This document shows, in pieces, positions 1 through 30,116 of a stretch of DNA of 30,116 bases (positions within the stretch are counted from its first letter, which is position 1; every line of letters starts with the position of its first letter). The DNA is taken from the NCBI GenBank assembly GCA_965644295.1, contig CBFFRP010000617.1:1-30116 (forward strand), given 5' to 3'. The DNA comes from Paraphysomonas bandaiensis (Eukaryota; Protista; Chrysophyceae). The notes under the pieces are model-generated. The model did no database searches and was not told the origin of the DNA. It worked only from the letters and a program-made list of their open reading frames with translations. Both the position numbers and the translations under genes were made by a program.

Positions 1-293
1 TATTAGAATATGGACTGTATCCTAGTATATTCAATGTGGTACTTGAAGACAATGTACGAGAATACAGTGAAGTATGGTGATGTGTAGATGCTGTTATGAT
101 ATTGAGAAAACTGAAATAGTTTGCTCTTTCAAGATATGTTTAGTAGCGAAAGGTCTACAGAAGTAGTGATTTATGCATGGCACAAAACGAGCTTGTGTTG
201 TTTAACACAATTCGTGTAAACGATATTAATAAATCTATCTAGTCTAACAACTTAATCTCTCTTTGATCTAAGTAAAATGAGCATTTCCCAACA
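1..293 (+). repeat. 5' LTR of copia A (TATT...AACA)
   Basis: Matches 5164-5456 with no difference found by eye; followed directly by the PBS. Confidence 0.95.
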
Positions 294-1276
294 TGGTAGC
301 GAGCGAGGAGGGAGAGAAGGAGGATAGAGGAGTAGTTCCTCAGTTCAACGAGACTAACGTTGAACAATGGATTGAGGACTTCGAGACATTCCTTATGAGG
401 AAGGAACAAAGCGAGGTAGCGGTGGAACTGCCACCTAAGGAGAGCGACTTCGGGGAGCAGCCACTTACGTTGATGGAGGAGAAGGCGTACAGACAGGCTG
501 TGAAGAGGTATTGGAAGGCGAACGCCATAGCTTATTCTTACTGCAGGGATGCGGTGCAGCATTCCCCGAAAGCGCTGCGTAAATTCCATCTTACCCACAA
601 AGCGTTCAAGGCAGAAGGGAGTGGTGTAAACAGGTTCAAAACACATGTAATGATTGATGAGTTGAAGAAGTGTTTTGCTGGAGGGAAGCAAAATAGGATC
701 AGTGACCTCTTAACTCAATATGGTTCTTTCCGTATGCGTCCGGAGGAGACGGCGAAGGACTACGTACTACGGTTCGAACTACTGCTGAAGGAACTACAGG
801 AGCAGCAGCAGGATATCTCGGAGGTATCAAAAACAAGTCGACTACGAGAAGGCTTGCTCAATGAAGAGTATGCTCAACTGAGAGTTGGATTATACTTGAT
901 GGATGATGATGTTAATTATGTAACTGTATCACGTAAGATAGAAGGCTATGATGATACTATGGCTGGGAAGGAAGCGTTGGAGAAGAAGCGTAAAAGAGTG
1001 GAGGAGCTGAACCTGATAGACAGTAAGAAACGATATCGCAGAGAGAGGGATCATCGTAAGAAGAACAACGGTAAGAAGAAGCCGATGAAGAAGGATACAG
1101 AGATTACAGGGCAGCGACCTGGAAGTGCCGAATATACTGGGTGCAGAAATTGTAAGTCAAAGGAACATCTTGCCATCGATTGTCCAGCATCGAAAAAAGA
1201 AGTACTCGCAAAGCAAGAGCAAGGCTGTGAGGTTTCAAGATGGAAGGAAACCAGACAAAAGACTACTTACAGTTGA
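293..1276 (+). CDS. gag: Gag of copia A (true product probably continues into pol near 1191-1200)
   Basis: VPQFNETNVEQWIEDFETFL N-terminus, MRPEETAKDYVLRFELL copia gag motif, CCHC zinc knuckle CRNCKSKEHLAIDC. Confidence 0.9.
   Translation: MVASEEGEKEDRGVVPQFNETNVEQWIEDFETFLMRKEQSEVAVELPPKESDFGEQPLTLMEEKAYRQAVKRYWKANAIAYSYCRDAVQHSPKALRKFHLTHKAFKAEGSGVNRFKTHVMIDELKKCFAGGKQNRISDLLTQYGSFRMRPEETAKDYVLRFELLLKELQEQQQDISEVSKTSRLREGLLNEEYAQLRVGLYLMDDDVNYVTVSRKIEGYDDTMAGKEALEKKRKRVEELNLIDSKKRYRRERDHRKKNNGKKKPMKKDTEITGQRPGSAEYTGCRNCKSKEHLAIDCPASKKEVLAKQEQGCEVSRWKETRQKTTYS
294..304 (+). promoter_or_regulatory. Primer-binding site, probably for initiator tRNA-Met
   Basis: TGGTAGCGAGC is complementary to a tRNA 3' end GCUCGCUACCA, with the U72-A73-CCA pattern of iMet tRNA. 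The same TGGTAGCGA occurs at 25623 (+) and at 16906 (-). Confidence 0.8.
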
Positions 1277-4200
1277 AAACATCAGGCGTGGAGAGCCAGC
1301 GGATTTGTCTGACGAAGACGAAGCAAATATGATCGAGCAACAGGAAGAGTATCACTTGTCATGTAATGTGTATGAGACGAATATATGCAGTAGTGTGCAT
1401 GAGGATATTCACTATACATACATTGATACCTGTTGTTCGTCATCAATGTTTTTGATAAATGATGTGAATATACTTGATAGTCATATGCACACATCAAAGG
1501 TTATTAATGGTTCGAAAAAAGGGTCAGAGATATGCGTCACGAGTGTAGGTTCCCGTGGAGCATGGAAGAACATTGAGGTATCAAGTCAGATAAATCGGTG
1601 TCTTTGTTCTGGACGGAAGTTGAACGATATGGGATATCGATTTACTGTATGGTATGGTATACAGATATATGACAGAAATACGGATGAGCTGGTGTTGGAG
1701 GGACCTATGAAGAATGGAATGACTGCTGTGCCAACACAGCAGTTATTGGAGCTTCCAGACGTATCGACATCCAGTGATTCAGAAGTAAATCTCAGTGACC
1801 GTACGGGTGAGGATGAACTGGAGCTGTTACATAGGAGAGCGGGTCATTTTAACAAGCATGCGTTGGTAGAAGCCCACAAAAGAATGCTAATTATTGGGAC
1901 TGGACTGAAACGAAAACATCTCTCGAAACGTGTTTCCAAAGAACAGTGTCTATGTGATGTATGCGCCAGGGCGAAGATCACCAGAGTAAGTTTTCGGACA
2001 AAGGATGAGGACTCCGTTCGTCCAAATTTCTCGGCCGATATAGCAGTATACTTAAATTGTCCAGCTCGAGGAGGGGAAATATATGTGCTCAAACTAACAC
2101 ACCATGCCAGTCGGATGTTCTGGTCGGAAGGGCTTGTTCATAGGACTGGGTCATCGGTACTGCAGGTTTTCAAGAAGATTTTTGAAGGAGATGTGAAAAG
2201 GTACAAATTAGAAATGCATCATTACCATGCAGATGGAGCAGGGGAGCTAATATGTGATGAGCTGCGACAATATCTTAGGTCACAGGGTTGCTATCAACAT
2301 ACGTGGAGCTCTACGGACTCTCCTGAGATGAACGCGATTGAGGAGCGGAAATTCAGGACCTGTGGTGAGATGACATTAGCGATGCTGATTCAGTCAGGAT
2401 TGCCTTCACAGTTTTGGCTAGATGCCTACATGGCAGCCAGGTACATATTAATTCGATTGCCTACAAAGACAGCGAAGGGGTATATGTCCCCTCTTGAATT
2501 TTTGACTGGTGAGGCTCCCAACCTGAAATATCTCAGAGTATGGGGGTGTCGTGCGTATGTCATCACTACAAAGGCGGATCGACGGAAAGACTGGGACGAC
2601 AAGGCCCTTATCGGATATCTGATAGGATATTCAGATGAAAAGGTAGGATATGATGTATATCTACCTGCGACTGATAGGGTCGTCACGTCGGTACATGTAT
2701 TAACTGATGAGTCCATACCGTCACGCTCGGAGAGCTATTTCGCTGAGATAGATGCTCTTCGAGTGAAGGAGGCCGAGAGACCGAAAATTGTGTCTGACTA
2801 TGCGGGCTTAGAAGGTACATATCATATTGATGATGAGGATGGTCTTCTCTACAAGACCACGAGAGTAGTAGAACGAAAGGGGGTAATAGTAGCCTATCGA
2901 TCTCTGGTAACTGCAGGTCGGAAGCATATCGAGCACCGGGTGCCGATTCACGTCGAGGACGTAGTGCGAATGACTGCAGAAACTCCCGGGAATACCGGAT
3001 ATATCGGAAAGGGGGACGCCCTGAGTACTATGCCAGCCAGGGTGCTGGACCAGGGAAGACCTGGAGGGTTACAGGAGAGTCCTGACCCAACCTGTCAGGA
3101 GACAGCTGTGAGGTTGCAGACCTCTGAAGACTATGAGTCTGGGGTTGTGAGCGGGGCTCCTCCCACAACGCACGATGTGCGTGCTCAGGATGAGCAAGGT
3201 ACGGGTTCTTATATACCTCGTCGACCGATTGAACTAGATGGTGATGGTCGGGTCCGACGCAAACGGCTGCAGCGGAGACTGGCAAACGCGTCAGTTTTAG
3301 GAGAGATTAATATGGTTGAAGTACCGGATGCGCATAATATTGATCTTAACCATGCAGAGACAGAAGATATCAAGATACCAAATTCATATGCCGAGGCAGA
3401 GAGATCTCCACAGTATCAACAATGGAGAAAAGCTCGAATGGTGGAGAAGACATCATTGCTGAAAAGACGTGTCTTGAAGATCGTGAAAATTCCAAGCGGA
3501 GTGAAATTAGTTAGAGCGAAATATGTGCATACGGTGAAGCGAGACATACTAGGGAATATAGTAAAGTACAAGGCTCGGCTAGTGGCATTAGGAAATCTCC
3601 AAGAGAAGAAGGAGGAGGAGCCGTCCACTTTCGCTCCAGTGGTTAAGGGTATAACCATTAGACTAGTGTTAGCGATTGCGTTTATGTTACAGATGCATGT
3701 GCATCAATTAGATGTATCATCCGCATTTTGCTATGCAGATCTGGAGGATGACGTGTATATGGCACCTCCACCAGATGAGGAATTACTAGCTGGATGGTGT
3801 TTTCAACTAATCAAGGCATTGTATGGACTGCGATCTTCACCGCGACAGTGGAATAAACATATTGACAAGTTTATTAAATCATTGCATTTTACTCCGTGTA
3901 TTTTGGATACGTGTTTGTATATGCGATGGAGTAACGGAAAACTGCATTTATTATTGATATATGTTGATGATATCATAATTGCATCCGCTGATCTGACTTA
4001 CTTGGAAAGCGTAAAGCGTAGGTTCTGTGAAACATTCGAGATGCATGATCTGGGAGTGTGTAAGCGATTTCTGAACATCAGGATAACCAGAGGAGAAAAT
4101 TGGTATATGTTAGATCAATCTGAGTATGCTAAGAATATTATCAAGAAATTCAGCTCAGTTATGGGAAAGAGTAGTAAGAATAAGGAGGCCCCACTACCTA

Positions 4201-4990
4201 CTAATGTTCAGGATCTGTTGGCAGAGGAACGTGAACTTACGGAGGAGCAGAAGCAGTGGGTTGACTCATTTCCGTATCGGCAAATTATTGGAGCAGTGTT
4301 GTATCTAGCAATGCATACTAGACCTGATCTGGCTTATGCAGTGGGGTTATTGTCTCGATTTAGTAGTTGTCCGACATATGCATCGTGCAAACTGGCGATT
4401 CACTTATTGAAATATTTGCGTGGAACAATTGATGAGGGCATCAGATTCAGTGGGAGTGAGTTCGACTTACATGTGTTCAGTGATTCAGATTGGGCTGGTG
4501 ATAGACTGACTCGGCGATCGACAACAGGATACATTGTGTTCTTATGTGCAGGCGCATTGGCCTGGCAGTCTAAACTACAGACCACAGTTGCAACTTCGAG
4601 CATGGAATCTGAATATATGGCGGAGTATGCGGCTATGCAAGAACTGGTGTGGCTTCGGGGGTGTTCAAGGAGCTCGGGCTCTTAGTTGCGAAGCCGACTC
4701 CATTCTTTATGGATAGCAAGAGTGCGAAAGATCTCTCCGAGAATCCTGTGTATCATAAGAGGTCGAAGCATATAGACATCAAGTATCACTGGGTGAGAGA
4801 GCATGTAAATGGAAAATTTCCTACGGCAAAGTTGATTCATGTGTCGACGGATGATATGGCGGCTGATATTTTCACGAAGGCATTGTCAACGAAACTTTTC
4901 AGTCGTCATGAGAAAACTATTACCGGGGTTAAGAGAAGTGTGTCAACCAGAGTTGAGGAGCAGCAGAAGAAGCGACCCCGAAGAGGTTAA
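1125..4990 (+). CDS. pol: Pol of copia A: protease, integrase, RT, RNase H (one frameshift at a G-run near 4657-4661)
   Basis: HHCC (LLHRRAGH...CDVC), integrase ADI / HADGAGE / NAIEER, YKARLVALG, QLDVSSAF, LYGLRSSPRQW, YVDD, SDSDWAG, then KHIDIKYH and ADIFTK in ORF 4649-4990. Confidence 0.93.
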
Positions 4991-8128: not shown

Positions 8129-9166
8129 ATGTACCATGAGAGTCGTATTGATAAAGTATCCTCTGACATACATACATTTCACCACAACAGTGACGATAAC
8201 GAGCTATCAATATCTAGATATGAAATACTTATACCAATACATACACACAGTGCTAATATAGAGAGGGATGAGGATAGTATTACTGATAAATGTGTTAGAA
8301 AAAGACGTAAACGGTCCAGAAGTTCATGTTTTTTGACAATGTATCATCTTAGAAATACCCCAATATGGGATGTTGGCAAACAATTATGGAGAGGAGCGTT
8401 ATTACTAGCTGATTATATTATATATCAGAGAGAGCAATTGTGTCACAGGATTGTATTTGAACTTGGAGCAGGTATTGGACTATTAGGAAAAGTTGCTAGT
8501 TTGTTGCCGTGTAGGAGTGTGTATGTTACTGATGTGAACCAGTCTGTGGTCGACCTAATGATAAAGAACATGAACACAAACAGTCATGTATTACCTTTTC
8601 ACAATAATGCGACCATTGCACAGACTCATCCCAGGGTGCTGAACTGGTGTAATGAAAAGTCATGCAGAGATAGACTTGATCCCGCTGATAAATGGACGCC
8701 GCAAGACACTTCAGAATTGAACAATCACAATGTGCTATGGCTTGCTGCAGATGTCATATACGACGACCAGCTGACAGATGCATTCTTTGCAACGCTAACG
8801 CGGTTTATGAACCCAGGTGAGCACTTATGGTTGGCCTTAGAAAAGAGATTCAACTTTACAGTGGAAGAAATGTCCCTTGTCGCTCATGGCTACAGACGTT
8901 TCTTGTCATATATTGGAGAAAATATATCTGCTAGCAGTGTAGCACCTCTAGAATCAGATATTGATGAAAGAACTGACAAGGATAATACTTCCCATACTCC
9001 GCAGTGTGGTAGTATGACCAGCGTAGATGAGTCATCGAATAACGAATCTTCGCCAACCGTGAGCTTCAAAGGGCACAGGATTCCGATGAATTTTCCACAG
9101 TACGTATTAGATTATGATCGCGTGAAAGACCTTGAGCTGTGGGATATTGTACTACTAAACAAATAA
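8129..9166 (+). CDS. METTL22: METTL22-like class I SAM-dependent protein lysine methyltransferase (Methyltransf_16 family)
   Basis: VGKQLWRGALLLADYI, FELGAGIGL (motif I), VTD, LAADVIYDDQLTDAFF and EKRFNFT, motifs typical of METTL22. Confidence 0.85.
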   Translation: MYHESRIDKVSSDIHTFHHNSDDNELSISRYEILIPIHTHSANIERDEDSITDKCVRKRRKRSRSSCFLTMYHLRNTPIWDVGKQLWRGALLLADYIIYQREQLCHRIVFELGAGIGLLGKVASLLPCRSVYVTDVNQSVVDLMIKNMNTNSHVLPFHNNATIAQTHPRVLNWCNEKSCRDRLDPADKWTPQDTSELNNHNVLWLAADVIYDDQLTDAFFATLTRFMNPGEHLWLALEKRFNFTVEEMSLVAHGYRRFLSYIGENISASSVAPLESDIDERTDKDNTSHTPQCGSMTSVDESSNNESSPTVSFKGHRIPMNFPQYVLDYDRVKDLELWDIVLLNK

Positions 9167-10689: not shown

Positions 10690-11428
10690 ATGCTGGATAC
10701 GGAAGAATTAGCTGTCTTCATCTTAACAGTTTCGCGGAATGTCGGCTTTACTGATGCAGTTGCTTGGACGCTAATCATTTCGCTATTCGCTAGATCTATA
10801 GAAGTATGTGGACTACTCCTCTAAAGTAGTAACGAAATGATTGATTTTCATGTAGGTAGTAAAGGTACTGAGAAGTAGAGACAGAAACCGAGTAAGAAAT
10901 CGGTAGTATGCATTGGACAAAATGGACAAATTAACAGAAAGGGAGTTTAAGAGAATGTTCAGAATGTCAAGGCGTCATTGCTGGTTGTGAGGCTAATCTA
11001 AAGTTCCATATGTTCAGTGCAAGGAACTCTGGGTCGACGAATGACGTGCTCGCCTGGAGCAATTCAGACATGAGACAATGCTTGGACGACTCAATGCTAC
11101 CGGAACCGTACTACTTTATTTTGGTGACGAAGCTTTCGTAAATACACAGCAGTTTCTAGTTCCATGGTCTGGAAGGGGATTAGATCCCTGGAAAGTTTCT
11201 TTCAATTACCACTTGTCATCAATGAGACAGTGTATTGAAAGATCTTTCTCTCATTTAACTCAGAGATGGGGAATTTTTTGGAGACCTCTACAGTGCGGGG
11301 TTGATAAGTGGACACTTGTTTGTACTGTGACAGCTAAACTTCATAACTACATCATAGACATGGGCGAGGGTGGTGATAACGACATGCCAGTGGTTCGAGC
11401 AATTGCTCCTGGCGTCGTTGCAAGTTGA
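10690..11428 (+). pseudogene. Harbinger (DDE_Tnp_4/HARBI1-like) transposase, fragmented
   Basis: LTEREFKRMFRMSR, GSTNDVLAW, FGDEAF, FNYHLSSMRQCIERSFSHLTQRWGIFWRPL, LHNYIID. The central part is missing. Confidence 0.85.
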
Positions 11429-12812: not shown

Positions 12813-13535
12813 ATGTATCAATCTGATGTGACATTCCCAAATGATTTCACGGGTTTGAGATCGGTGTTTGACGGTCAAGATATATTTGATACTCATATGA
12901 CGAAAACTTATTCCGCGGGCAGTGGTCCAACCGCATATGCAAACGGAGACTACAATTTGAAATGCTCTTCATATGGTAAGTACAGGACGGTAGATCCTTT
13001 AAATTCATGTAACTTATTATTTGATGATAGTGACGAGACTTTCTGGGGCAATAACAGAAATAACACGGGCCCGAATGGTATAGACAATTATAGAGACGGT
13101 GTTTTTTATGCGATGCCATCTGGTGAAGCTTATGATGGAACAACCGGCAATTATATAGGCAGTAGTGGAACAGATTATTACTTCTCAACAATGTATGATA
13201 CATCACACTCCATTGATGGAGAATGGGTGCAAATACAATTGCCTTTTAAGATGCGATTGACATTTATATCAACACAGGAAAGAAGCACACAACAGGAAAG
13301 AACAATGAAAGCTTGTTATATCCTTGGTTCCGATGATGGAACAACATGGAGTTATATAGATGACGTAGCATTTCCAGCAACTCAAGACTCAACTTTATAT
13401 ACTGAGCCGGTGACAACAACAAAGAGATATTCAATCATACGGATTGTAATCGCATCTGCCGGTTATATTATGTTTAATACGATCAACTTTAGATTGACAG
13501 GTGATACGTGGAGTCTTGAGTCGTCAACTGAATAA
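12813..13535 (+). CDS. Discoidin/F5-8 type C-like (galactose-binding fold) protein, virus-like
   Basis: GEWVQIQLP and YILGSDDGTTWSYI motifs; intronless, Y/G/T/N-rich. The real N-terminus may lie at 10460, before the Harbinger insertion. Confidence 0.7.
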   Translation: MYQSDVTFPNDFTGLRSVFDGQDIFDTHMTKTYSAGSGPTAYANGDYNLKCSSYGKYRTVDPLNSCNLLFDDSDETFWGNNRNNTGPNGIDNYRDGVFYAMPSGEAYDGTTGNYIGSSGTDYYFSTMYDTSHSIDGEWVQIQLPFKMRLTFISTQERSTQQERTMKACYILGSDDGTTWSYIDDVAFPATQDSTLYTEPVTTTKRYSIIRIVIASAGYIMFNTINFRLTGDTWSLESSTE

Positions 13536-17637: not shown

Positions 17638-20600
17638 TTACACTAATACCATATCCTTGATCTGCTGCTTAGCAGCAGCATGTCCTTGATCTGCTGCCAG
17701 CCGATACCATCTCACGGCCTCAGCCTTGTCCACAGACACTCCTTCGCCATTAGCATAGCACACTCCAAGGTTAAACTGAGCAACAGCATTTCCTTGATCT
17801 GCTGCCAGCCGATACCATCTCACGGCCTCAGCCTTGTCCACAGACACTCCTCTGCCATTAGCATAGCACATTCCAAGGTTAAACTGAGCATCAGCATTTC
17901 CTTGATCTGCTGCCAGCCGATACCATCTCACGGCCTCAGCCTTGTCCACAGACACTCCTTCGCCATTAGCATAGCATATTCCAAGGATAAACTGAGCAAC
18001 AGCATCTCCTTGATCTGCTGCCAGCCGATACCATCTCACGGCCTCAGCCTTGTCCCCAGACACTCCTATGCCATTAGCATAGCACATTCCAAGGTTACGC
18101 TGAGCAACAGCATGTCCTTGATCTGCTGCCAGCCGATACCATCTCACGGCCTCAGCCTTGTCCACAGACACTCCTATGCCATCAGCATAGCACATTCCAA
18201 GGTTACAATGAGCATCAGCATGTCCTTGATCTGCTGCCAGCCGAAACCATCTCACGGCCTCAGCCTTGTCCACAGACACTCCTCTGCCATTAGCATAGCA
18301 CATTCCAAGGTTAAACTGAGCATCAGCATTTCCTTGATATGCTGCCAGCCGATACCATCTCACGGCCTCAGCCTTGTCCACAGACACTCCTTCGCCATTA
18401 GCATAGCATATTCCAAGGATAAACTGAGCAACAGCATCTCCTTGATCTGCTGCCAGCCGATACCATCTCACGGCCTCAGCCTTGTCCCCAGACACTCCTA
18501 TGCCATTAGCATAGCACACTCCAAGGTAAAACTGAGCAACAGCATGTCCTTGATCTGCTGCCAGCCGATACCATCTCACGGCCTCAGCCTTGTCCACAGA
18601 CACTCCTCTGCCATCAGCATAGCACACTCCAAGGTTACACTGAGCAACAGCATCTCCTTGATCTGCTGCCAGCCGATACCATCTCACGGCCTCAGCCTTG
18701 TCCCCAGACACTCCTATGCCATTAGCATAGCACACTCCAAGGTAAAACTGAGCAACAGCATTTCCTTGATCTGCTGCCAGCCGATACCATCTCACGGCCT
18801 CAGCCTTGTCCACAGGCACTCCTCTGCCATTAGCATAGCACACTCCAAGGTTACACTGAGCAGCAGCATCTCCTTGATCTGCTGCCAGCCGATACCATCT
18901 CACGGCCTCAGCCTTGTCCACAGACACTCCTTCGCCATTAGCATAGCACATTCCAAGGTTAAACTGAGCATCAGCATTTCCTTGATCTGCTGCCAGCCGA
19001 TACCATCTCACGGCCTCAGCCTTGTCCACAGACACTCCTTCGCCATTAGCATAGCATATTCCAAGGATAAACTGAGCAACAGCATCTCCTTGATCTGCTG
19101 CCAGCCGATACCATCTCACGGCCTCAGCCTTGTCCCCAGACACTCCTATGCCATTAGCATAGCACACTCCAAGGTAAAACTGAGCAACAGCATGTCCTTG
19201 ATCTGCTGCCAGCCGATACCATCTCACGGCCTCAGCCTTGTCCACAGACACTCCTATGCCATCAGCATAGCACATTCCAAGGTTACAATGAGCATCAGCA
19301 TGTCCTTGATCTGCTGCCAGCCGAAACCATCTCACGGCCTCAGCCTTGTCCACAGACACTCCTCTGCCATTAGCATAGCACATTCCAAGGTTAAACTGAG
19401 CATCAGCATTTCCTTGATATGCTGCCAGCCGATACCATCTCACGGCCTCAGCCTTGTCCACAGACACTCCTTCGCCATTAGCATAGCACACTCCAAGGTA
19501 AAACTGAGCAACAGCATCTCCTTGATATGCTGCCAGCCGAAACCATCTCACGGCCTCAGCCTTGTCCACAGACACTCCTTCGCCATTAGCATAGCACATT
19601 CCAAGGTTACGCTGAGCAACAGCATTTCCTTGATCTGCTGCCAGCCAATACCATCTCACGGCCTCAGCCTTGTCCACGGGCACTCCTCTGCCATTAGCAT
19701 AGCACACTCCAAGGTTAAACTGAGCAACAGCATCTCCTTGATCTGCTGCCAGCCGATACCATCTCACGGCCTCAGCCTTGTCCACGGGCACTCCTCTGCC
19801 ATTAGCATAGCACATTCCAAGGTTACACTGAGCAACAGCATGTCCTTGATCTGCTGCCAGCCGATACCATCTCACGGCCTCAGCCTTGTCCACAGACACT
19901 CCTTCGCCATTAGCATAGCACACTCCAAGGTAAAACTGAGCAACAGCATCTCCTTGATATGCTGCCAGCCGAAACCATCTCACGGCCTCAGCCTTGTCCA
20001 CAGACACTCCTTCGCCATTAGCATAGCACATTCCAAGGTTACGCTGAGCAACAGCATGTCCTTGATCTGCTGCCAGCCAATACCATCTCACGGCCTCAGC
20101 CTTGTCCACGGGCACTCCTCTGCCATTAGCATAGCACACTCCAAGGTTAAACTGAGCAACAGCATCTCCTTGATCTGCTGCCAGCCGATACCATCTCACG
20201 GCCTCAGCCTTGTCCACGGGCACTCCTCTGCCATTAGCATAGCATATTCCAAGGTAAAACTGAGCAACAGCATTTCCTTGATCTGCTGCCAGCCGATACC
20301 ATCTCACGGCCTCAGCCTTGTCCACGGGCACTCCTCTGCCATTAGCATAGCACACTCCGAGGTTACACTGAGCAACAGCATTTCCTTGATCTGCTGCCAG
20401 CCGATACCATCTCACGGCCTCAGCCTTGTCCACGGGCACTCCTCTGCCATTAGCATAGCACACTCCAAGGTAAAACTGAGCAACAGCATCTCCTTGATAT
20501 GCTGCCAGCCGAAACCATCTCACGGCCTCAGCCTTGTCCACAGACACTCCTTCGCCATTAGCATAGCACATTCCAAGGTTACGCTGAGCAACAGCATTTC

Positions 20601-23373
20601 CTTGATCTGCTGCCAGCCAATACCATCTCACGGCCTCAGCCTTGTCCACGGGCACTCCTCTGCCATTAGCATAGCACACTCCAAGGTTAAACTGAGCAAC
20701 AGCATCTCCTTGATCTGCTGCCAGCCGATACCATCTCACGGCCTCAGCCTTGTCCACGGGCACTCCTCTGCCATTAGCATAGCACATTCCAAGGTTACAC
20801 TGAGCAACAGCATGTCCTTGATCTGCTGCCAGCCGATACCATCTCACGGCCTCAGCCTTGTCCACAGACACTCCTTCGCCATTAGCATAGCATATTCCAA
20901 GGTAAAACTGAGCAACAGCATTTCCTTGATCTGCTGCCAGCCGATACCATCTCACGGCCTCAGCCTTGTCCACGGGCACTCCTCTGCCATTAGCATAGCA
21001 CACTCCGAGGTTACACTGAGCAACAGCATTTCCTTGATCTGCTGCCAGCCGATACCATCTCACGGCCTCAGCCTTGTCCACGGGCACTCCTCTGCCATTA
21101 GCATAGCACACTCCGAGGTTACAATGAGCAAGAGCATGTCCTTGATCTGCTGCCAGCCGAAACCATCTCACGGCCTCAGCCTTGTCCACAGACACTCCTC
21201 TGCCATTAGCATAGCACACTCCAAGGTTACACTGAGCATCAGCATGTCCTTGATATGCTGCCAGCCGATACCATCTCACGGCCTCAGCCTTGTCCACAGA
21301 CACTCCTTCGCCATTAGCATAGCACATTCCAAGGTTACACTGAGCAACAGCATTTCCTTGATCTGCTGCCAGCCGAAACCATCTCACGGCCTCAGTCTCG
21401 TTTTTAGCTAGACCAATACCTTCGCAATAAAAATACCCAAGTAGAAAGTGCTTATGAGCATATAAAGAAGGGTCACATAAAGCTTCCAGTCCTGGCAGAA
21501 TAGACTTTACCAAACCACGTGCTCTTTCGATATCTTTGGGAATGGTACATACACTACTCGCATTGAGTAATACAGCTAAATAGCCCTTAGCTAGCACATT
21601 ATCATGTTTAGCTACTGCTTTCAGTGCCTGCCACGCATGCACCTCTCCACATCGCGCCCGACAATATAATTCAAATGCTTGACTCGCAACAGCCACATTA
21701 GTGAAAGAATCATCAGATACAACTAGATTTGCACTAATAACAGCACTCACTGCTGACATGTCATCATCGTCGCCAGCGGCTCCTACGCCCCTCACATTCG
21801 CTAATATTTGTTTCACATCGGCAGCAAGATCGATCGTGTTTGGTCGTTCCCTAGGGTCCTGGTGGAGACAGCCGCTTTTACCGTCTTTATCTCCCACAAT
21901 CCTCATTAGAGAAGCAGCATGGATGTCCTCGCTCTGGGGCTCAAACAATTTAGGACGGAGACTTTTGAGGACCACATTTCTCACAATTACTCCGATTCCA
22001 CAATCTTTCCATGGAACATCCCGCGTCAGGATTTCGTTGACTGTAATGCCATATGCGTAGTTATCTGACCTGTCCGAATAGGGTGCACGACCTTCGCCAT
22101 CGTGGTCCAGCAGCTCTGGAGACATGTAAGCATTGCTTCCCACTGCCATGCCCATTGACGAGGAACTCGTAGAGTGGGATAGTGTGGCGGCAGTCGCCAG
22201 ACCGAAATCAGATATCTTAGCGGTGTAAGTGCGGCTATGAGTGTTCCAGACGAGCAGTATGTTCTGCGACTTGACGTCTCTGTGGGTAATTCTATGGTAG
22301 TGCAGATACAGCAACCCAGCAGCCACATCAGCACACACAGTCAATTGAGAGGCAAAGTGATCCAGACGGTCTCCGTTAGGCATGCACACATCTCGGTGCA
22401 GCAAGTCGTACAGAGAACAATGGGCCAGCTCCAGCACAATGATACCTTTCGACAACGAGGCGCCAAAGTAACCTATCACATTACAGTGCTGCACCAGCTT
22501 CATGATACGAGCTTCTCGGGAGAATTTGCGGGTTTCTTTTGCAGATGGCACTGCCTGTAGGGTAATGTGCTTGATAGCACTAGGGTTACCATTGTAGACA
22601 CCTTTGTATACCGTGCCATAGGCCCCTCTGCCAATGACATGCTCATCTATCTTCGACCACGCCAGCAGAGCAAGTTCTATATCTTCAAAGGTTACAGGGC
22701 GGCTATTAGAAGGTGGTGCTGGTGGTGGAGGAGGTGTATTGGGCGAAGTGCTCGTGTTACTGTTGTCACTGTCAGTGCTGACGTCTGCATCATCTACCGC
22801 CTGCTGGAGCGCGAGACTTGACGCGGCTGCTTGCTGTAAGGCTGCACGGATGTCAGTGGAGTCACGAGGGATTGGTAAGCCGATCGTAGCCACAAACTTC
22901 ATCACATCATCTCGTGTATCTCTATTATCGCGCAAGAGCTCCTGATGGGAGATGGTCTGAGCAATGGAAACTACAAAGAAGAAGAAAGGTAAGCAACATC
23001 ACACGATACAAAACCAAACTTGCAGGTTCGTCTTACCTTCTAGATGCAGATCAGCACACAGCTGGGTGATGCGCTGGTTGAGACTGTCAAACTCGAACCC
23101 TTTAAACATAGACGTCAACACCTTCCGTACATAAGTCTTTGATGTAAACTTCTGACAGTAATCAGCACAATCCTGCATGAGAAGGAGGAGTTTATGAAGG
23201 TTGGAGGTTGTTGTATCTTGGAACGATGGCATCTTTGCTAGTTGTCTAAGAAGGCCTTCAAAACTCATACACCGCTGGAGAATGTTATGACACTGAGCTT
23301 TCTGTCCTTCGATGTCATCATACAGTGCCTTTAATCCCGCTAATATGTCAAATAGAGTGGAGAGAATATCCAT
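17638..23373 (-). CDS. MLKL-like N-terminal helical domain + TKL protein kinase + Sel1-like repeat array; exons 23373-23037 and 22970-17638, about 1889 aa
   Basis: Exon 1 pattern (QKAQCHNILQRC...LHKLLLLMQDCADYCQKF...FDSLNQRITQLCADLHL) resembles MLKL_NTD/RPW8-type bundles. A 66-bp GTAAG...pyrimidine tract-TAG intron (23036-22971) joins in frame. Kinase motifs are GRGAYG, AIK, HRDVKSQN, DFG, YMSPE. Sel1 consensus is AQxNLGxCYANGxGV..DKAEAVRWYRLAADQG. Confidence 0.88.
17684..21400 (-). repeat. 34 near-identical 108-bp (36-aa) Sel1 coding repeats plus a partial, diverged first unit
   Basis: Phase anchors CCTTG at 17684 and 21356 are 3672 bp apart, which is 34 x 108. The frame is kept throughout. 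Confidence 0.95.
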
Positions 23374-23596
23374 GTTTCCTCACTGCATTCGATATGGTCC
23401 CTTTAGGGAAATCTTAGATAGGGATCTTGGTAGGCACATGTATGCGTATAGGCAGTCAGCATCTTATTTTTTCGGAAATTATTTGAAGCAAATATACTCT
23501 ATATCACTGCAATATAACTACGGCTAGAATACATATAATTGTCGTCTCAATATTTGAGACATCTTTGAACAAAAATATACAAAGGATGCCAATACG

Positions 23597-24426
23597 TGTA
23601 TGTATGTATGTATGTATGTATGTATGTATGTATGTATGTATGTATGTATGTATGTATGTATGTATGTATGTATGTATGTATGTATGTATGTATGTATGTA
23701 TGTATGTATGTATGTATGTATGTATGTATGTATGTATGTATGTATGTATGTATGTATGTATGTATGTATGTATGTATGTATGTATGTAGGTATGTATGTA
23801 TGTAGGTATGTATGTATGTATGTATGTATGTATGTATGTATGTATGTATGTATGTATGTATCTATGTAGGTATGTATGTATGTATGTATGTATGTATGTA
23901 TGTATGTATGTATGTATGTATGTATGTATGTATGTATGTATGTATGTATGTATGTATGTATGTATGTATGTATGTATGTATGTATGTATGTATGTATGTA
24001 TGTATGTATGTAGGTATGTATGTATGTATGTATGTATGTATGTATGTATGTATGTATGTATGTATGTATGTATGTATGTATGTATGTATGTATGTATGTA
24101 TGTATGTATGTATGTATGTATGTATGTATGTATGTATGTATGTATGTATGTATGTATGTATGTATGTATGTATGTATGTATGTATGTATGTATGTATGTA
24201 TGTATGTATGTATGTATGTATGTATGTATGTATGTATGTATGTATGTATGTATGTATGTATGTATGTATGTATGTATGTATGTATGTATGTATGTATGTA
24301 TGTATGTATGTATGTATGTATGTATGTATGTATGTATGTATGTATGTATGTATGTATGTATGTATGTATGTATGTATGTATGTATGTATGTATGTATGTA
24401 TGTAGGTATGTATGTATGTACGTATG
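23597..24426. repeat. (TATG)n microsatellite, about 830 bp
   Basis: Nearly pure tetranucleotide array with a few TAGG/TATC/TACG variants. Confidence 0.99.
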
Positions 24427-25136
24427 TTCGCTGTAAATTTTTCTGATCGCCCCTTTCTGTACTTAATCGCATTGAATAGTTGATTCCTGGCTTTCTCAGC
24501 AATTAGTTTTTCGTAACAGTACTCACGGATAGCGTAAAAAACTTTCGAAGGACTTGATCCCGATTTCTCCAGAATATTCTTTCTCCAGTGTGGATTCCAC
24601 TGATTATTGACTTGTTTCTTTGTGTTTAAATACGTGGTTAGGACATGTTTTCCAAAGTATCTTAGTCGCAATTTCTCCTCGCTCAATTTGCTGTATTTAT
24701 TCCGGAAATCTTCAGTTGGCTGCTTTCCCGAATAGCTATCCACATATGTCTGAAAAAAACTTGGCCACTTCTGCTCAGGCAAATAAGCAAAAAAATTATC
24801 GCGCTCGTACGTCTTGGTGGGAACAGAAGTAATGGCATCAATCAATTTCACCGCTGCCTGGTTCCATAAAGAAGGGTTTCTGTCGTGATCTGATTCTACG
24901 CCGATATCGTCGCCAACAATGCTGCACAGGAAGGTGAAGCATACTTGTGCTAATCGCTTCTGTTTTGATGGAGTATTATCACTGGTTAAATACTTCAGCA
25001 TTTCTTCCATCTGGACGATAGCTGGTACATCCTTCAGTTCGAGACAGGATGTGACCTCGGCATCATCAGACGTGAGGGTGACGATTTCTTCGCTTTCTAC
25101 CTCTTCTTGTTCCAGATCATCGTTGAATTCACTCAT
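24427..25136 (-). pseudogene. Unknown protein (about 237 codons) running into the microsatellite; possibly TE-derived
   Basis: ATG-started, protein-like ORF with an acidic N-terminus and no stop before the TATG array. No family recognised. Confidence 0.5.
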
Positions 25137-25301: not shown

Positions 25302-25622
25302 TGTTGGAATACGTATGGTTCTCTAAGATAGTACTGTAGAATACGTTAAATACAATGTGAAAAACAGTAATACGTAGTCAATAGTCAAAAGGTGCTATAT
25401 AGCTATAACTGTGAAACTGAAGTATTATATCATGACGATTCAAGATACGGAAGTTGAGCAGTGGTTAACATGAACGAAATAATTTATCATGTTGTTGACA
25501 TGTGCTACATGACAACACACACAATTGTGTATACAATCATAATAAAGTAATCTATCTAGTTTGACTAACTTAAACTTCTCTTACAACGATCTTAATCATC
25601 TGAAAATGGTCTTTAGTCAATA
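25302..25622 (+). repeat. Putative 5' LTR of copia B
   Basis: Starts TGTTGGAATA, shares patches with LTR A (AATAAA..TCTATCTAGT), and ends right before the PBS. The partner LTR is outside the window. Confidence 0.7.
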
Positions 25623-28600
25623 TGGTAGCGAATGCGGAGGAGAGAAGGAGGATAGAGCTGATGTTCCATGGTTCGACGAGAGCAACGTTGAACAATGGAT
25701 CGAAGACTTTGAGACGTTCCTTATGAGAAAGGAGCAGAGTGAGGTGGCTCTAGAAAGGCCACCAGAGGAAGAGGATTTCGGAATTCAACCCCTGAATAGT
25801 CTTGAGACCAAGTCCTACAAAGAAGCGGTGGACAAGTATTGGAAGGCGAATGCAATTGCCTACTCATACTGCAGAGAGGCGGTGAAGCGATCTCCGAAGG
25901 CGCTGCAGAAGTTTCATCTGAAGCACAAGGAGTTCAAGGCAGCTGAAGGAAGAGTTAATAAGTTCAGCGCCAGAGAGATGGTTAGCACTCTTAAATCGTG
26001 TTTTGAAGGGGGAACACAAAACAAGATTAGTGCTCTGCTTGCTCAGTTTGGATCATTCGAGATGAAGCCAGGGGAGACCGCGAAAGAGTATGTACTGCGT
26101 TTTGAGCTGCTTCTTCGTGAACTTCAGGCGCATAACCAAACGGTAACGGAAGAATCAAAAATTAGTAGGCTGAAGGAGGGAATTATCAGTGATGAATATG
26201 ACGGTTTGAATTATGCCCTGTATTTAATGCCCGATGATGTACCATATGAATTGCTATCCAAACGTATCGAACAGTTCGACGACACCAAGTATGGGAGGAA
26301 AATCATAGAGAAGAAGCGCAAGAGCACGGAGGAGCTGAATCATATTGAAAAGCCTCGAAAGAAAGAGAGAGTATCTACAAAGAGGAAGTGCACTTATTGC
26401 TCGAAGAAAGGTATAATACACAATCATAATACAGAACAATGTAGGAAGAAAAAGGGGGAAACGAAGGGACAAAGACCGGGCAGTAAGGAATATACAGGAT
26501 GCAGAGTATGCAAATCCAAAAACCATCGCGCGAACGAATGTCCCCGAAATTCGACTGGAAAGACCAAGAAACCCCAGAAATCTGGGAAGGTTTTCACATT
26601 CGAGAATATCCGCAGAGGAGGAACCGAGTCTGACTCGGAGTCCGAAGCGAATATGCTTTATGACTGTGCTGTTGATATATATGATAAAAGTGACACATGT
26701 TGTATGATTGGTACTGCTGAACACTATACATACATAGATACATGCTGTTCATCATCAATGTTCTTGATGAATGATGTGACCATGCTTGACACTCATATGA
26801 ATACATCAAAGGTGATAAACGGATCTAAGAAGGGATCAGAGATTCATATCACAAGTGTGGGTTCCCGTGGAGCATGGAGAGACATAGAAATTTCAGATCA
26901 GATCAATCGATGCCTGTGCTCCGGACGTAAGCTGAACGAAATGGGCTATCGATTCACGGTGTGGTATGGGATCCAAATTTATGACTGTAATACCGGTGAG
27001 CTGGTACTGGAGGGACCCATGAAAAATGGAATGACTGCAGTTCCAACTCAGCAGCTGTTGGAGCTTCCAGATGTGTCTACACCGAGTAATTGTGAAGTAA
27101 ATCTTAGCGATAGGACTGGTGAGGACGAGCTGGAACTGCTGCATAGGAGAATGGGCCATTTCAACAAAGGGGCTCTAACGGAGGCACATAGAAGGATGTT
27201 GTTCACTGGCTCAAATCTGCAGAGGAAGCACCTATCGAAGACTGCATTAAAAAAATCTTGTCTCTGTAGCATATGTGCCAGATCAAAGATTACGAGAGTT
27301 TCGTTTCACACAAAGGAGGATACGGATGTCAAGCCGGACATATCGGCTGATGTGCAAGTATTTCTGAATACTCCCGCTCGAGGTGATGAGCGCTACGTGA
27401 TCAAACTAACTCATCACCCGAGTAGGATGTTCTGGGTAAAAGGCGTAAACCAGCGTACTAAAGAAGAAGTGATTCAGTTTTTTAGAGAGGTGTTCGAAGG
27501 AGAGATTAGGCAATATAAGCTGAGAGTGGACCACTACCACGCTGATGGAGCTGGAGAACTCATAAATCAAGAACTTAGGAGCTATTTGAGATCACAAGGC
27601 TGAGCTATTTGAGATCACAAGGCTGCTACAAACATACTTGGTCTTCAACAGATAGTCCGGAAATGAATGCAGTAGAGGAGCGAAAATTCAGGACTGCATC
27701 AGAGATGGCGTTGGCGATGTTGTTGCAGTCAGGCCTACCGGTTCCATTCTGGTTAGACGCGTATCCATGCTGCTCGCACATGCACTGATCCAGACTCCCT
27801 ACAAGGACGGACAGAGGATACATGTCCCCATATGAGTATGTGCCTGGAATAAGCCACCCAGTTTGAAATATTTTAGAGTATGGGGGTGCAAAACTTATAT
27901 ATTGACACCTAAGGCGGATAGGCGAAAGGACTGGGACGATAAATCAAAGAATTGGATACCTAGTGGGATATTCGGAAGATAAAGTTGGATACCAGGTGTA
28001 TCTCCCAGCAACCGATAAGAATATTACGCAATCGACGCTCTCCGAGTACGAACAGCACCTAGACCAAAGACGGTGAATGATTATCAGCATCTCGTGAAGA
28101 CTTTTCACATAGACGATGAAGACAGGCTGTTGTACAAGACCACCAGAGTGGTAGAAGAAAGGGTGTCATTGTTGGTTATCAGTCACTTATATGCGGGAGA
28201 ATCCACATTGAGCAGAAGGTACCCATACATATAGAAGATGTTCAGGTAATGACAAAGGAATACGCCTGGATACACGGGATATCGGGAACGAGGGACGCCT
28301 CTAGTACCACTGATGGACGGAGTACGTCCACTATCCCAGAAGCCTGAGAGCCATCAGGAGCAGCTAGTTAACCATGGTATTATTCAGGGAGCACCTGATG
28401 AAGATATGACTCAAGGAGTACTTGATGAAGATGCAGCTCAGGGAGTACCTGAATATGCTGATACTATAAATTCTAACAGTACTAATACCCTACAGAGAGT
28501 ATCTAAAGGGATGCAGAGAAACGTAAGCGTTTACGGAGGAGGCTAGCTAATGCTTCAGTGTTAGGAGAAATTAACATGATAGAGGTAATGGATGCCGATG

Positions 28601-30116
28601 TAAATGTCATGGATTCAGAGGAGAGTACTGAGAATAAACACGTCCATGAACCGAACAGTTTTCTAGAGGCGGAGAGGTCCCCTCAAGCGGACGAATGGAG
28701 AACAGCCAGACGAATAGAGAAGAAAGCTCTTTTACGAAGAGGCGTTTTGAAGATAGTACGTCGACCATCTGGGGTCAAATTAATCAGATGTAAGTATGTT
28801 CACAAACTCAAGCGTGACATGCTAGGCAACATACAGAAGTATAAAGCTCGACTAGTCGCACTGAGGAAATCTTCAGGAGAAAACTGAGGAGGAGCCATCT
28901 ACATTTGCACCGGTCGTAAAAGGGATAACTATCAGGCTCGTGATTGCAATTGCTTTTATAATAGCATATGCATGTACACCAGCTTGATGTCAGTTCTGCA
29001 TTTTGTTATACAAATTTAGATGAAGATGTCTACATGTACCCACACTCAGATGAGGAGCTCAGCAATGGATGGTGCTTTAAAACTGTGCAGGCACTCTTGG
29101 TTTGAGCCTCACCGCGTCAGTGGAATCGCCACATCGATAAATTCATAAAGTCAGCCAGTTTCCGATCATGACTAGATACCTGCTTATATTATCGTTGGCA
29201 CCAAGGCAAACTTACGTTATTACTCCTGTATGTAGATGACATCATTATCGCATCTGTGGATTTTGAATTCCTTGTTTTTGTCAAGAACAAGTTCTGCCCT
29301 AAATAAATTTGAAATGAGGGACATGGGGAGAGTGAAGTTTCCCTAAATATTCGAATCACGAGAGGCGAAGACTGGTTCAAACTAGATCAATCTGATGGCA
29401 GAGAAAGTGATTCAGAAATTCAACCATGTCATGGGAAACAGTAGAAAGAATAAGGAAGCTCCGTTGCCATCAAATGCACAAGAACTACTAGCTGCAGAAC
29501 GGGAGCTACATCAGAACAGGAGGAATGGGTCTCAAAATTTCCGTATCGTAGTATTGTTGGAGCAATCCTGTATCTCGCACTCCACACAAGACCAGATCTC
29601 GCCTATGCAATCGGACTACTATCGAGATACAGCAGTAATCCTACATACGCATCGTGTCGTTTAGCTATTCATTTATTGAAATATTTGAGAGGCACCACCA
29701 GCAAAGGAATCAAATTCAGTGGGAGTAAGTTTGATTTACATGTATTTAGTGATGCGGACTGGGCAGGTGATATACTAACGAGACGTTCAACTACCGGTTA
29801 TATTGTATTCTTATGTGCTGGAGCAATCGCATGGCAGTCCAAATTGCAGACTACAGTTGCAACTTCCAGTATGGAGTCCGAGTATATGGCAGAATATGCG
29901 GCCATGCAAGAACTGGTGTGGCTACGGGGGGTGTTACGAGAGCTAGGACTCGCATTGACGAAGCCAACCCCATTTATGACAGCAAGGTACCAGAGAATCA
30001 CATAAATCCAGTCTTACCACAAAAGGTCAAAACATATTCAGATAAAGTACCACTGGGTTCGGGAACACGTAAATGGAAGGTTTCCTACAGCCAGATTGAT
30101 TCATGTATCGACTAAG
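25622..30116 (+). pseudogene. gag-pol of copia B, open to 27603 then heavily frameshifted
   Basis: 680-aa ORF with zinc knuckles, YIDTCCSS protease and HHCC. A 23-bp tandem duplication at 27579-27624 is followed by many indels. Confidence 0.88.

Follow-up and report, generated by a model that had tools for sequence, protein, structure and literature searches.

A single-copy gene of the chrysophyte Paraphysomonas bandaiensis joining an MLKL-type helical bundle, an active-looking kinase and a homogenised Sel1 array: a candidate all-in-one cell-death receptor

Vertebrate MLKL combines a helical bundle, a brace and a pseudokinase, which is activated in trans by RIPK3, and possesses no C-terminal repeat domain. 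Plant MLKLs (AtMLKL1-3, wheat Pm13) share the bundle-brace-kinase layout and have an additional C-terminal region; MLKL/RPW8-type proteins have an immune role in plants (10.1101/681015, PMC10951266). Fungal HeLo-like domains fused to kinase or pseudokinase domains are mentioned in a recent review (PMC12881547), whilst in Glomeromycotina MLKL-family homologues with Sel1 repeats have been recorded (PMC8778642) and kinase plus Sel1-like genes constitute expanded families (PMC8647823). The repeats of fungal NLRs are highly conserved within a gene, evolve in concert and diversify at positions of their concave face (PMC4986451). Necroptosis-type machinery was reported to be absent from protists (PMC7539657). 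Here, we describe a gene of the protist Paraphysomonas bandaiensis located on a stretch of 30,116 nucleotides, hereafter the window (contig CBFFRP010000617.1 of assembly GCA_965644295.1, positions 1 to 30,116), whose predicted product joins an MLKL-type bundle, a kinase of the TKL group and about 34 near-identical Sel1 units.

The gene (23373..17638, minus strand) has two exons and a spliced product of 1889 aa. On the minus strand, open reading frames (ORFs) of 124 and 1765 codons were found at 22999..23373 and 17638..22935, correspondingly. Exon 1 (23037..23373, minus strand; start codon 23373-23371) encodes aa 1-112 and the first base of codon 113; reading the DNA by eye placed its end at 23037 (…CTA GAA G) and the start of exon 2 at 22970. 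The phase 1 intron between them (22971..23036, minus strand) comprises 66 nt, begins with GTAAGACG and ends with TTCTTTGTAG, i.e. it is of GT..AG type with the ends GTAAG...TTTGTAG. The exons join in frame, G|TT giving Val113, after which SIAQTISHQELLRDNRD reads on into the 1765-codon ORF, and the frame stays open for 1776 codons through all Sel1 units with zero indels.

We consider exon 1 to be spliced to the kinase exon because homologous proteins run colinear with the product and show no gap at the junction. The environmental protein P0122 showed 49% identity to the spliced product over aa 14-177, gap-free over the junction DLHLE|VSIAQTIS, and P0158, the nearest homologue, 33% over aa 1-526 (E 4e-84), likewise gap-free, its Met1 pairing with Met1 of the window protein. 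Moreover, MLKL_N and kinase occur in a single uninterrupted ORF in a paralogue (C135, see below) and in many database homologues. Judged from this homology, the join appears supported and the gene model settled, short of cDNA. One contig from a sequencing run of unknown type covers the intron unspliced (22959-23071), and in one contig of run X1 a low-depth joint 22986->23042 shows GT..AG in the plus-strand direction, opposite to that of the gene; the splice is neither proved nor disproved by these two contigs. It should be added that the run X1 contig skips 55 nt at window 22986-23044, plus strand, near mirror of the intron, which may represent antisense splicing of a transcript or else an allele with a deletion.

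Pfam and structure results given here refer to exon 1 and exon 2 taken separately, the spliced sequence being used in script-based comparisons. Exon 1 matched Pfam MLKL_N (PF22215) with 30.6 bits (cut-off 27; model positions 16-110 of 142), and with 29.3 bits in a six-frame search of the genome. Its AlphaFold (AF2) model, obtained from a 97-sequence alignment, had a mean predicted local distance difference test score (pLDDT) of 86.8 and helices at residues 3-20, 25-46, 57-74 and 85-111. The top Foldseek match of this model was the human MLKL executioner domain 6zvo_A (TM 0.73), at an E-value that was not significant. With VIA-align, the top rows were human MLKL 6ux8, 6zz1 and 6zvo (Z 11.0-11.5, rmsd 3.0), with 111 of 112 residues superposed on human MLKL residues 1-115, followed by AtMLKL2 (6lba, Z 11.0), the CC-R domain of NRG1.1 (7l7v, Z 10.3) and AtMLKL3 (6ka4, Z 9.5); helical bundles at Z below 13 can match through a common helix arrangement. 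In the language-model comparison (Atlas), the nearest clusters were MLKL_N, MCAfunc and RPW8, the first being an MLKL_N cluster with a score of 0.95. An MLKL_N-type fold was assigned because these three independent approaches, Pfam, language-model neighbours and structure search, agree, and a four-helix bundle of the MLKL/RPW8/HeLo type is thus the well supported, partly model-based identity of the N-domain.

The start of exon 2 (22780..22970, minus strand; aa 113-176), included in the 49% identity to P0122 over aa 14-177, probably contributes the end of the last helix of the bundle and a putatively helical, brace-like region. It is followed by a Ser/Asn/Pro-rich linker (22696..22779, minus strand; aa 177-204, TPPPPPAPP, with PPPPPAPP from aa 192 on) and by the protein kinase domain (21835..22644, minus strand; aa 222-491), to which Pfam Pkinase gave 135.7 bits over model positions 4-254. 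All catalytic motifs are present in the translation: the G-loop GRGAYG (226-231), the Lys of SAIKH, the Glu of REARIM, HRDVKSQN (342-349), DFG (367-369), SPE and DPRERP. They are likewise complete in P0158. The kinase belongs to the TKL group, since CTR1 and B-RAF are its nearest solved relatives (E about 1e-25), and is apparently catalytically competent. The post-kinase segment (21448..21834, minus strand) has an acidic stretch and degenerate helical-repeat capping units, with no Pfam match of its own. Neither NACHT, NB-ARC nor any other P-loop NTPase family was among the Pfam matches anywhere in the protein.

The Sel1 array (17671..21447, minus strand) comprises a slightly divergent first unit, 33 full near-identical units of 108 nt and a partial last one, and is succeeded by a C-terminal tail (17638..17670, minus strand; …KQQIKDMVLV, stop codon 17638-17640). 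Tandem Repeats Finder reported a 108-nt unit in 34.5 copies (17671-21395; 93% matches, no indels), and Pfam Sel1 scored 1281.6 bits in 35 stretches. The 33 full units, each exactly 36 codons long, have a mean pairwise DNA identity of 93.8% over 1188 aa, at least 85% over at least 100 aa being the threshold used. Twenty-two of the 36 codons are invariant in all 33 units, including synonymous sites; 13 vary with amino acid change and one synonymously only. Non-synonymous changes account for 18 of the 20 variable nucleotide sites, and the Nei-Gojobori pN/pS between units, computed from just these 20 sites in paralogous units of one allele, was 2.75. At 45 of 78 pairs of variable sites the haplotypes exceed what mutation without recombination allows, a sign that units have been shuffled; blocks of several units also recur along the array (unit string ...EFG...EFG..., LM, NO). 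As a side observation, a 1243-codon ORF runs antisense through the array (17680-21411, plus strand) because the repeat unit has no stops in that frame; it is not evidence of a second gene.

In the AF2 model of eight Sel1 units (pLDDT 97), helix A occupies positions 1-13, the loop 14-20 and helix B 21-33 of the unit. The invariant residues in Pfam numbering, L7, G8, Y11, G14, G16, D20, A24, W27, A31, A32 and G35, are those of the structural consensus, and positions 2, 4, 5, 6, 9, 13, 15, 18, 19, 28, 29, 33 and 36 vary. Sel1 units share the L7-G8-Y11 register with TPRs, where variability is highest at positions 2, 5, 9, 12, 13, 33 and 34, which border the concave face that binds ligands, and where positions 2, 5, 6, 9, 12 and 13 contact the ligand in HOP (PMC1261162). 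Using the combined set (2, 5, 6, 9, 12, 13, 33, 34), six of the 13 variable Sel1 positions were found within it (hypergeometric p=0.016), as were five of the six positions with at least three states (p=0.0008), the mapping being by TPR/Sel1 position equivalence in one allele and not by model coordinates. It is supported, then, that nearly all variation between units changes amino acids and that it is concentrated on the face predicted to bind ligands. This is the regime known from the repeats of fungal NLRs.

An initial annotation, made from the letters alone, had proposed much of this gene, and most of its structural claims agree with the results above: the 66-bp intron joining the exon 1 ORF to the long ORF by an in-frame 23037/22970 join, the MLKL-like N-domain (including the AlphaFold comparison with MLKL that it had suggested), the Pro-rich linker, the kinase with every catalytic motif, the 34 near-identical Sel1 repeats, and an NLR-like effector-switch-sensor order in which a kinase stands in place of the NTPase, which is true of the layout as no NACHT or NB-ARC was found by Pfam. 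It had also spoken of a hypervariable Sel1 sensor; the part of this that stands is the non-synonymous variation on the predicted binding face within one allele, whereas the gene itself is single-copy.

As regards the described systems, the modelled bundle resembles vertebrate MLKL most (superposition on residues 1-115, Z 11.0-11.5), at a sequence identity of ~15%, and the order bundle, brace and kinase, the brace helices being putative, is that of MLKL proper. No RIPK/RHIM partner was found, though no search was aimed at one. MLKL proper has a pseudokinase, whereas here the G-loop, VAIK Lys, alphaC Glu, HRD, DFG and SPE are all intact. The window protein is therefore not a strict MLKL: it carries a repeat sensor, and its kinase looks active. 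Plant MLKLs and the RPW8/CC-R domains of helper NLRs are alike in bundle fold and, for the former, in layout, but in plant MLKLs the kinase is atypical or a pseudokinase, and the C-terminus is short and serine-rich, with no internally conserved repeat sensor. With fungal NLRs (HET-E/HET-D/NWD; Dyrka et al. 2014, PMC4986451; Paoletti et al. 2007, PMC1805685) the protein has in common units ~85-100% identical within the gene and shuffled by unequal crossing-over, variation limited to a few binding-face positions, and an N-terminal death-type effector, sometimes HeLo/HELL in the fungal ones. It differs from them in having a kinase instead of NACHT/NB-ARC, in its Sel1 repeats instead of WD40, ANK or TPR proper, in occurring in a protist and not a fungus, and in being one gene and not a family exchanging repeats. 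Since an NTPase is missing, the protein does not count as an NLR, and the tripartite likeness to NLR/STAND receptors (effector, switch, C-terminal repeats) is an analogy of layout only.

The combination of domains is also found elsewhere. A profile search of 1.84 billion representatives returned 273 proteins with this N-domain, which stood at the N-terminus in 145 of the 156 proteins retrieved (matches and cluster members). More than 50 database clusters of ~600-aa proteins, mostly bacterial, carry MLKL_N, an active-looking kinase and Sel1 repeats, which are the three Pfam domains of the window protein in the same order; they differ from it in having 2-3 divergent Sel1 repeats versus ~34 near-identical ones, and identity to it is 22-25%. 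Their bacterial contigs include one of a Coxiella metagenome-assembled genome (MAG) and others of 2.3-2.4 Mb; in one locus (L010:400-2310) the gene lies beside a type VI secretion system (T6SS) cluster (IcmF, DotU, VasE, SciN) and in another, of a Thiotrichales MAG (L011:13-5489), within a tandem of three kinase genes. These proteins are possibly eukaryote-like effectors of intracellular bacteria. In Glomeromycotina, the likeness lies in the MLKL-family homologues with Sel1 repeats (PMC8778642), and Pfam MLKL_N was not called in the Rhizophagus and Glomus proteins among the matches listed. Because of the bacterial clusters and the Glomeromycotina report, the three-domain architecture is not new, contrary to the suggestion of the initial annotation that it might be undescribed; it exists elsewhere and is barely described. 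Novelty lies in the very large array of ~34 units, homogenised within the gene and diversifying, on such a protein and in a protist: the repeat regime was already described for WD40, ANK and TPR repeats of fungal NLRs (PMC4986451), and we found no description of it that concerns Sel1 repeats, an MLKL-type protein with a kinase switch, or a protist.

The closest relatives of the window protein are sparse environmental sequences. Residues 1-520 of the long ORF, searched under a length filter, gave only generic kinases at up to 32% identity, the N-terminal 523 aa of exon 2 a single match (P0397), JGI metagenomes only two unrelated kinase matches at 24%, a metagenome scan with the 42-nt degenerate repeat pattern zero matches, and no relatives were found in viral contigs. 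A Tara Oceans contig (1-789) is 100% identical over 591 nt to window 23438-22848, which spans the upstream region, exon 1 verbatim, the intron and the first 41 codons of exon 2; at 22848 it diverges fully into non-coding-looking sequence absent from this genome, and a run X1 contig likewise departs from the window sequence at 22804. The Tara Oceans divergence is either a natural structural variant or a chimeric contig. The verbatim exon 1 in this marine contig and the chrysophyte homologues of the two paralogues described next suggest that the organism is probably a marine stramenopile.

Three genes of the genome are headed by MLKL_N, the window gene and two others with different C-terminal modules (C135 and C367), the homologues of which come from chrysophytes; apart from the window gene, the genome has only short Sel1 genes of ordinary type. 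The first (C135:20462-26441, plus strand) encodes an MLKL_N bundle (31.2 bits) and, by its motifs, a pseudokinase, in which LGGSQHARVY replaces the G-loop, HGH replaces HRD, and DFG is missing. The pseudokinase is followed by about 570 aa and then by an overlapping ORF in another frame for an HBS1/eRF3-like translational GTPase (GTP_EFTU, 113 bits). The same domain set is fused in one 2065-aa protein of the chrysophyte Epipyxis (P0150), and C135 might couple an MLKL-like executioner to a GTPase of the stalled-ribosome type. The second (C367:41703-51923, minus strand) is a single ORF of 3407 aa, which has LRRK2-type ARM/armadillo repeats after a weak MLKL_N start (21.5 bits in the Pfam scan, below the cut-off of 27, and 25.7 bits in the genome search), and a relative of 3482 aa in metagenomes of the European Nucleotide Archive (ENA; P0125). 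An expanded family was rejected after the paralogue searches with exon 1, kinase and repeat DNA, all of which matched the window locus alone. The initial annotation had asked for a paralogue count and named a gene both single-copy and invariant as speaking against its interpretation; of these two, the single copy is what the genome contains.

From the observed gene structure, domain identities, fold similarity, intact kinase motifs and pattern of repeat variation, and by analogy with the systems above, we propose that the window protein may be a sensor, switch and executioner in one, a reading to which we give about even chances. One intact eukaryotic gene would produce a cytosolic protein of 1889 aa, in which an MLKL/HeLo/RPW8-type bundle with its brace-like helical region and Pro-rich linker would serve as effector, the catalytically competent TKL-type kinase as switch, and the Sel1 solenoid of ~1250 aa and ~34 units as sensor. 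Unequal crossing-over or gene conversion would keep the units near-identical while a few surface positions stay diverse. At rest, brace and kinase would keep the bundle from acting, in the manner of MLKL. A ligand on the variable Sel1 face might then cluster the molecules or lift this putative autoinhibition, the kinase would autophosphorylate, in the role that RIPK3 has for MLKL, and the freed bundle would oligomerise and permeabilise the membrane, with the death of an infected cell as the likely outcome and immunity as the presumed function.

Several results weigh against this proposal. In the 62.6-Mb genome, exon-1 protein, kinase (E<=1e-20) and repeat DNA each match only their own locus, and the gene, with no close paralogue, is unlike the typical expanded families of immune receptors. 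The related kinase-Sel1 proteins of mycorrhizal fungi and bacteria are not known to act in cell death. The bundle is not net basic (12 K+R versus 13 D+E), unlike the lipid-binding face of MLKL, and its fold matches carry the Foldseek and VIA-align caveats given above. The excess of pN over pS comes from 20 variable sites, and both this ratio and the assignment of variable positions to the concave face, made by equivalence, concern one allele. Short-read contigs stop at the edge of the array, so the unit count depends on an unverified assembly. No run recorded as RNA contains the locus, four other runs yielded only contigs there, and neither set gave evidence of its expression or splicing.

A rival reading is an ordinary signalling or scaffold kinase, in which the N-domain is regulatory or tethers the protein to membranes, the Sel1 solenoid is a scaffold, and the array is a neutral recent amplification under relaxed surface constraint; we regard this as possible, with a probability well short of even. 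It agrees with the great expansion of kinase-Sel1 proteins in Glomeromycotina, where they are viewed as signalling genes (PMC8647823, PMC8778642), with the active-looking kinase in place of a pseudokinase, with the single copy and the non-basic bundle, and with helical-bundle matches at Z 11 that are not decisive. Neutral amplification, however, predicts a synonymous to non-synonymous ratio of ~1:3 over all surface sites, whereas 18 of 20 sites were amino acid-changing and the variable ones cluster where TPRs have their binding groove; moreover, three methods place the N-domain specifically with MLKL_N, RPW8 and MCAfunc. These points argue against the ordinary-kinase reading.

That the array is partly an assembly product, with units collapsed, expanded or shuffled, so that their number, order and some mosaic variation would be unreliable in a gene that is itself real, seems to us improbable. 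Units 88-100% identical over 3.7 kb, the recurring blocks EFG, LM and NO, and the short-read contig of run X3 that starts at the array edge, ~45 nt beyond the edge of the compared stretch, are what such an artefact might leave. However, not one indel interrupts the frame in its 1776 codons across all units, the 14 codons that vary are always the same, a restriction not expected of joins made wrongly at random, and recurrence of blocks is the expected consequence of unequal crossing-over. As regards repeat polymorphism between individuals, other runs under the same species label contain only 6-12% of the words of the locus, at low depth. Equally remote, in our opinion, is an exchange of the gene or its kinase-Sel1 core with intracellular bacteria, in either direction, which would suggest a role in host manipulation and not self-defence. 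The more than 50 clusters on bacterial contigs, with their T6SS/IcmF neighbours, Thiotrichales tandem and Coxiella MAG, would agree with it; the spliceosomal intron and eukaryotic transposable-element neighbours of the window gene, GC content at third codon positions (GC3) of 0.42-0.46 near that of other genes (0.33-0.43), and the mere 22-25% identity to bacterial proteins, against 33-49% to intron-bearing or protist-like sequences, do not. Eukaryote-like domains in Legionellales-type bacteria were, besides, usually acquired from hosts.

Were the sensor-switch-executioner reading correct, an MLKL-type executioner could be coupled directly to an active kinase and a ligand sensor of its own, marine protists would carry suicide receptors resembling abortive infection, and diversification of sensors by repeat shuffling would not be limited to fungal NLRs. 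The mortality of marine protists is largely viral. A broader proposal, again by analogy, is that this protist might use MLKL-type bundles as the killing heads of a small non-NLR set of three all-in-one immune sensors, of which the window one, with its active kinase switch, would diversify its Sel1 sensor through the combination of concerted evolution and positive selection that fungi employ in NLRs; this we put forward tentatively and consider doubtful. If true, it would mean a convergent repeat-shuffling recognition repertoire outside fungi and a self-activating MLKL with no need for RIPK3. Against the reported absence of necroptosis-type machinery from protists stand the three MLKL_N-headed genes of this genome, one of them a true bundle-pseudokinase. 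Furthermore, the window gene gives context to the uncharacterised bacterial MLKL_N-kinase-Sel1 proteins and to the expanded kinase-Sel1 genes of mycorrhizal fungi.

The gene is situated between transposable elements. A complete-looking copia-type retrotransposon with gag, zinc knuckle, integrase and RVT_2 occupies 293-4685, a second, partial copia element has gag/integrase at 25561-27603 and a reverse transcriptase fragment at 28558-28887, and a fragment of a DDE_Tnp_4 (Harbinger-type) transposase lies at 11078-11428. The initial annotation had described the region as rich in transposable elements and viruses; these elements bear out the former, and no viral gene was found in the window. As to composition, the GC3 of the window gene is close to that of other genes of the genome and therefore gives no compositional sign of recent transfer, while the raised GC of the Sel1 array is due to its Ala/Gly codons; foreign origin by composition was rejected on these grounds. 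Directly upstream of the gene (window 23597-24000 and beyond) is a (TGTA)n microsatellite with at least 101 copies, which accounts for long spurious ORFs on both strands at 23504-25136, without Pfam matches. Two ordinary host-type ORFs, both on the plus strand, encode a Methyltransf_16 lysine methyltransferase (8129-9166) and a protein with an F5/8 type C (discoidin) domain (12813-13535).

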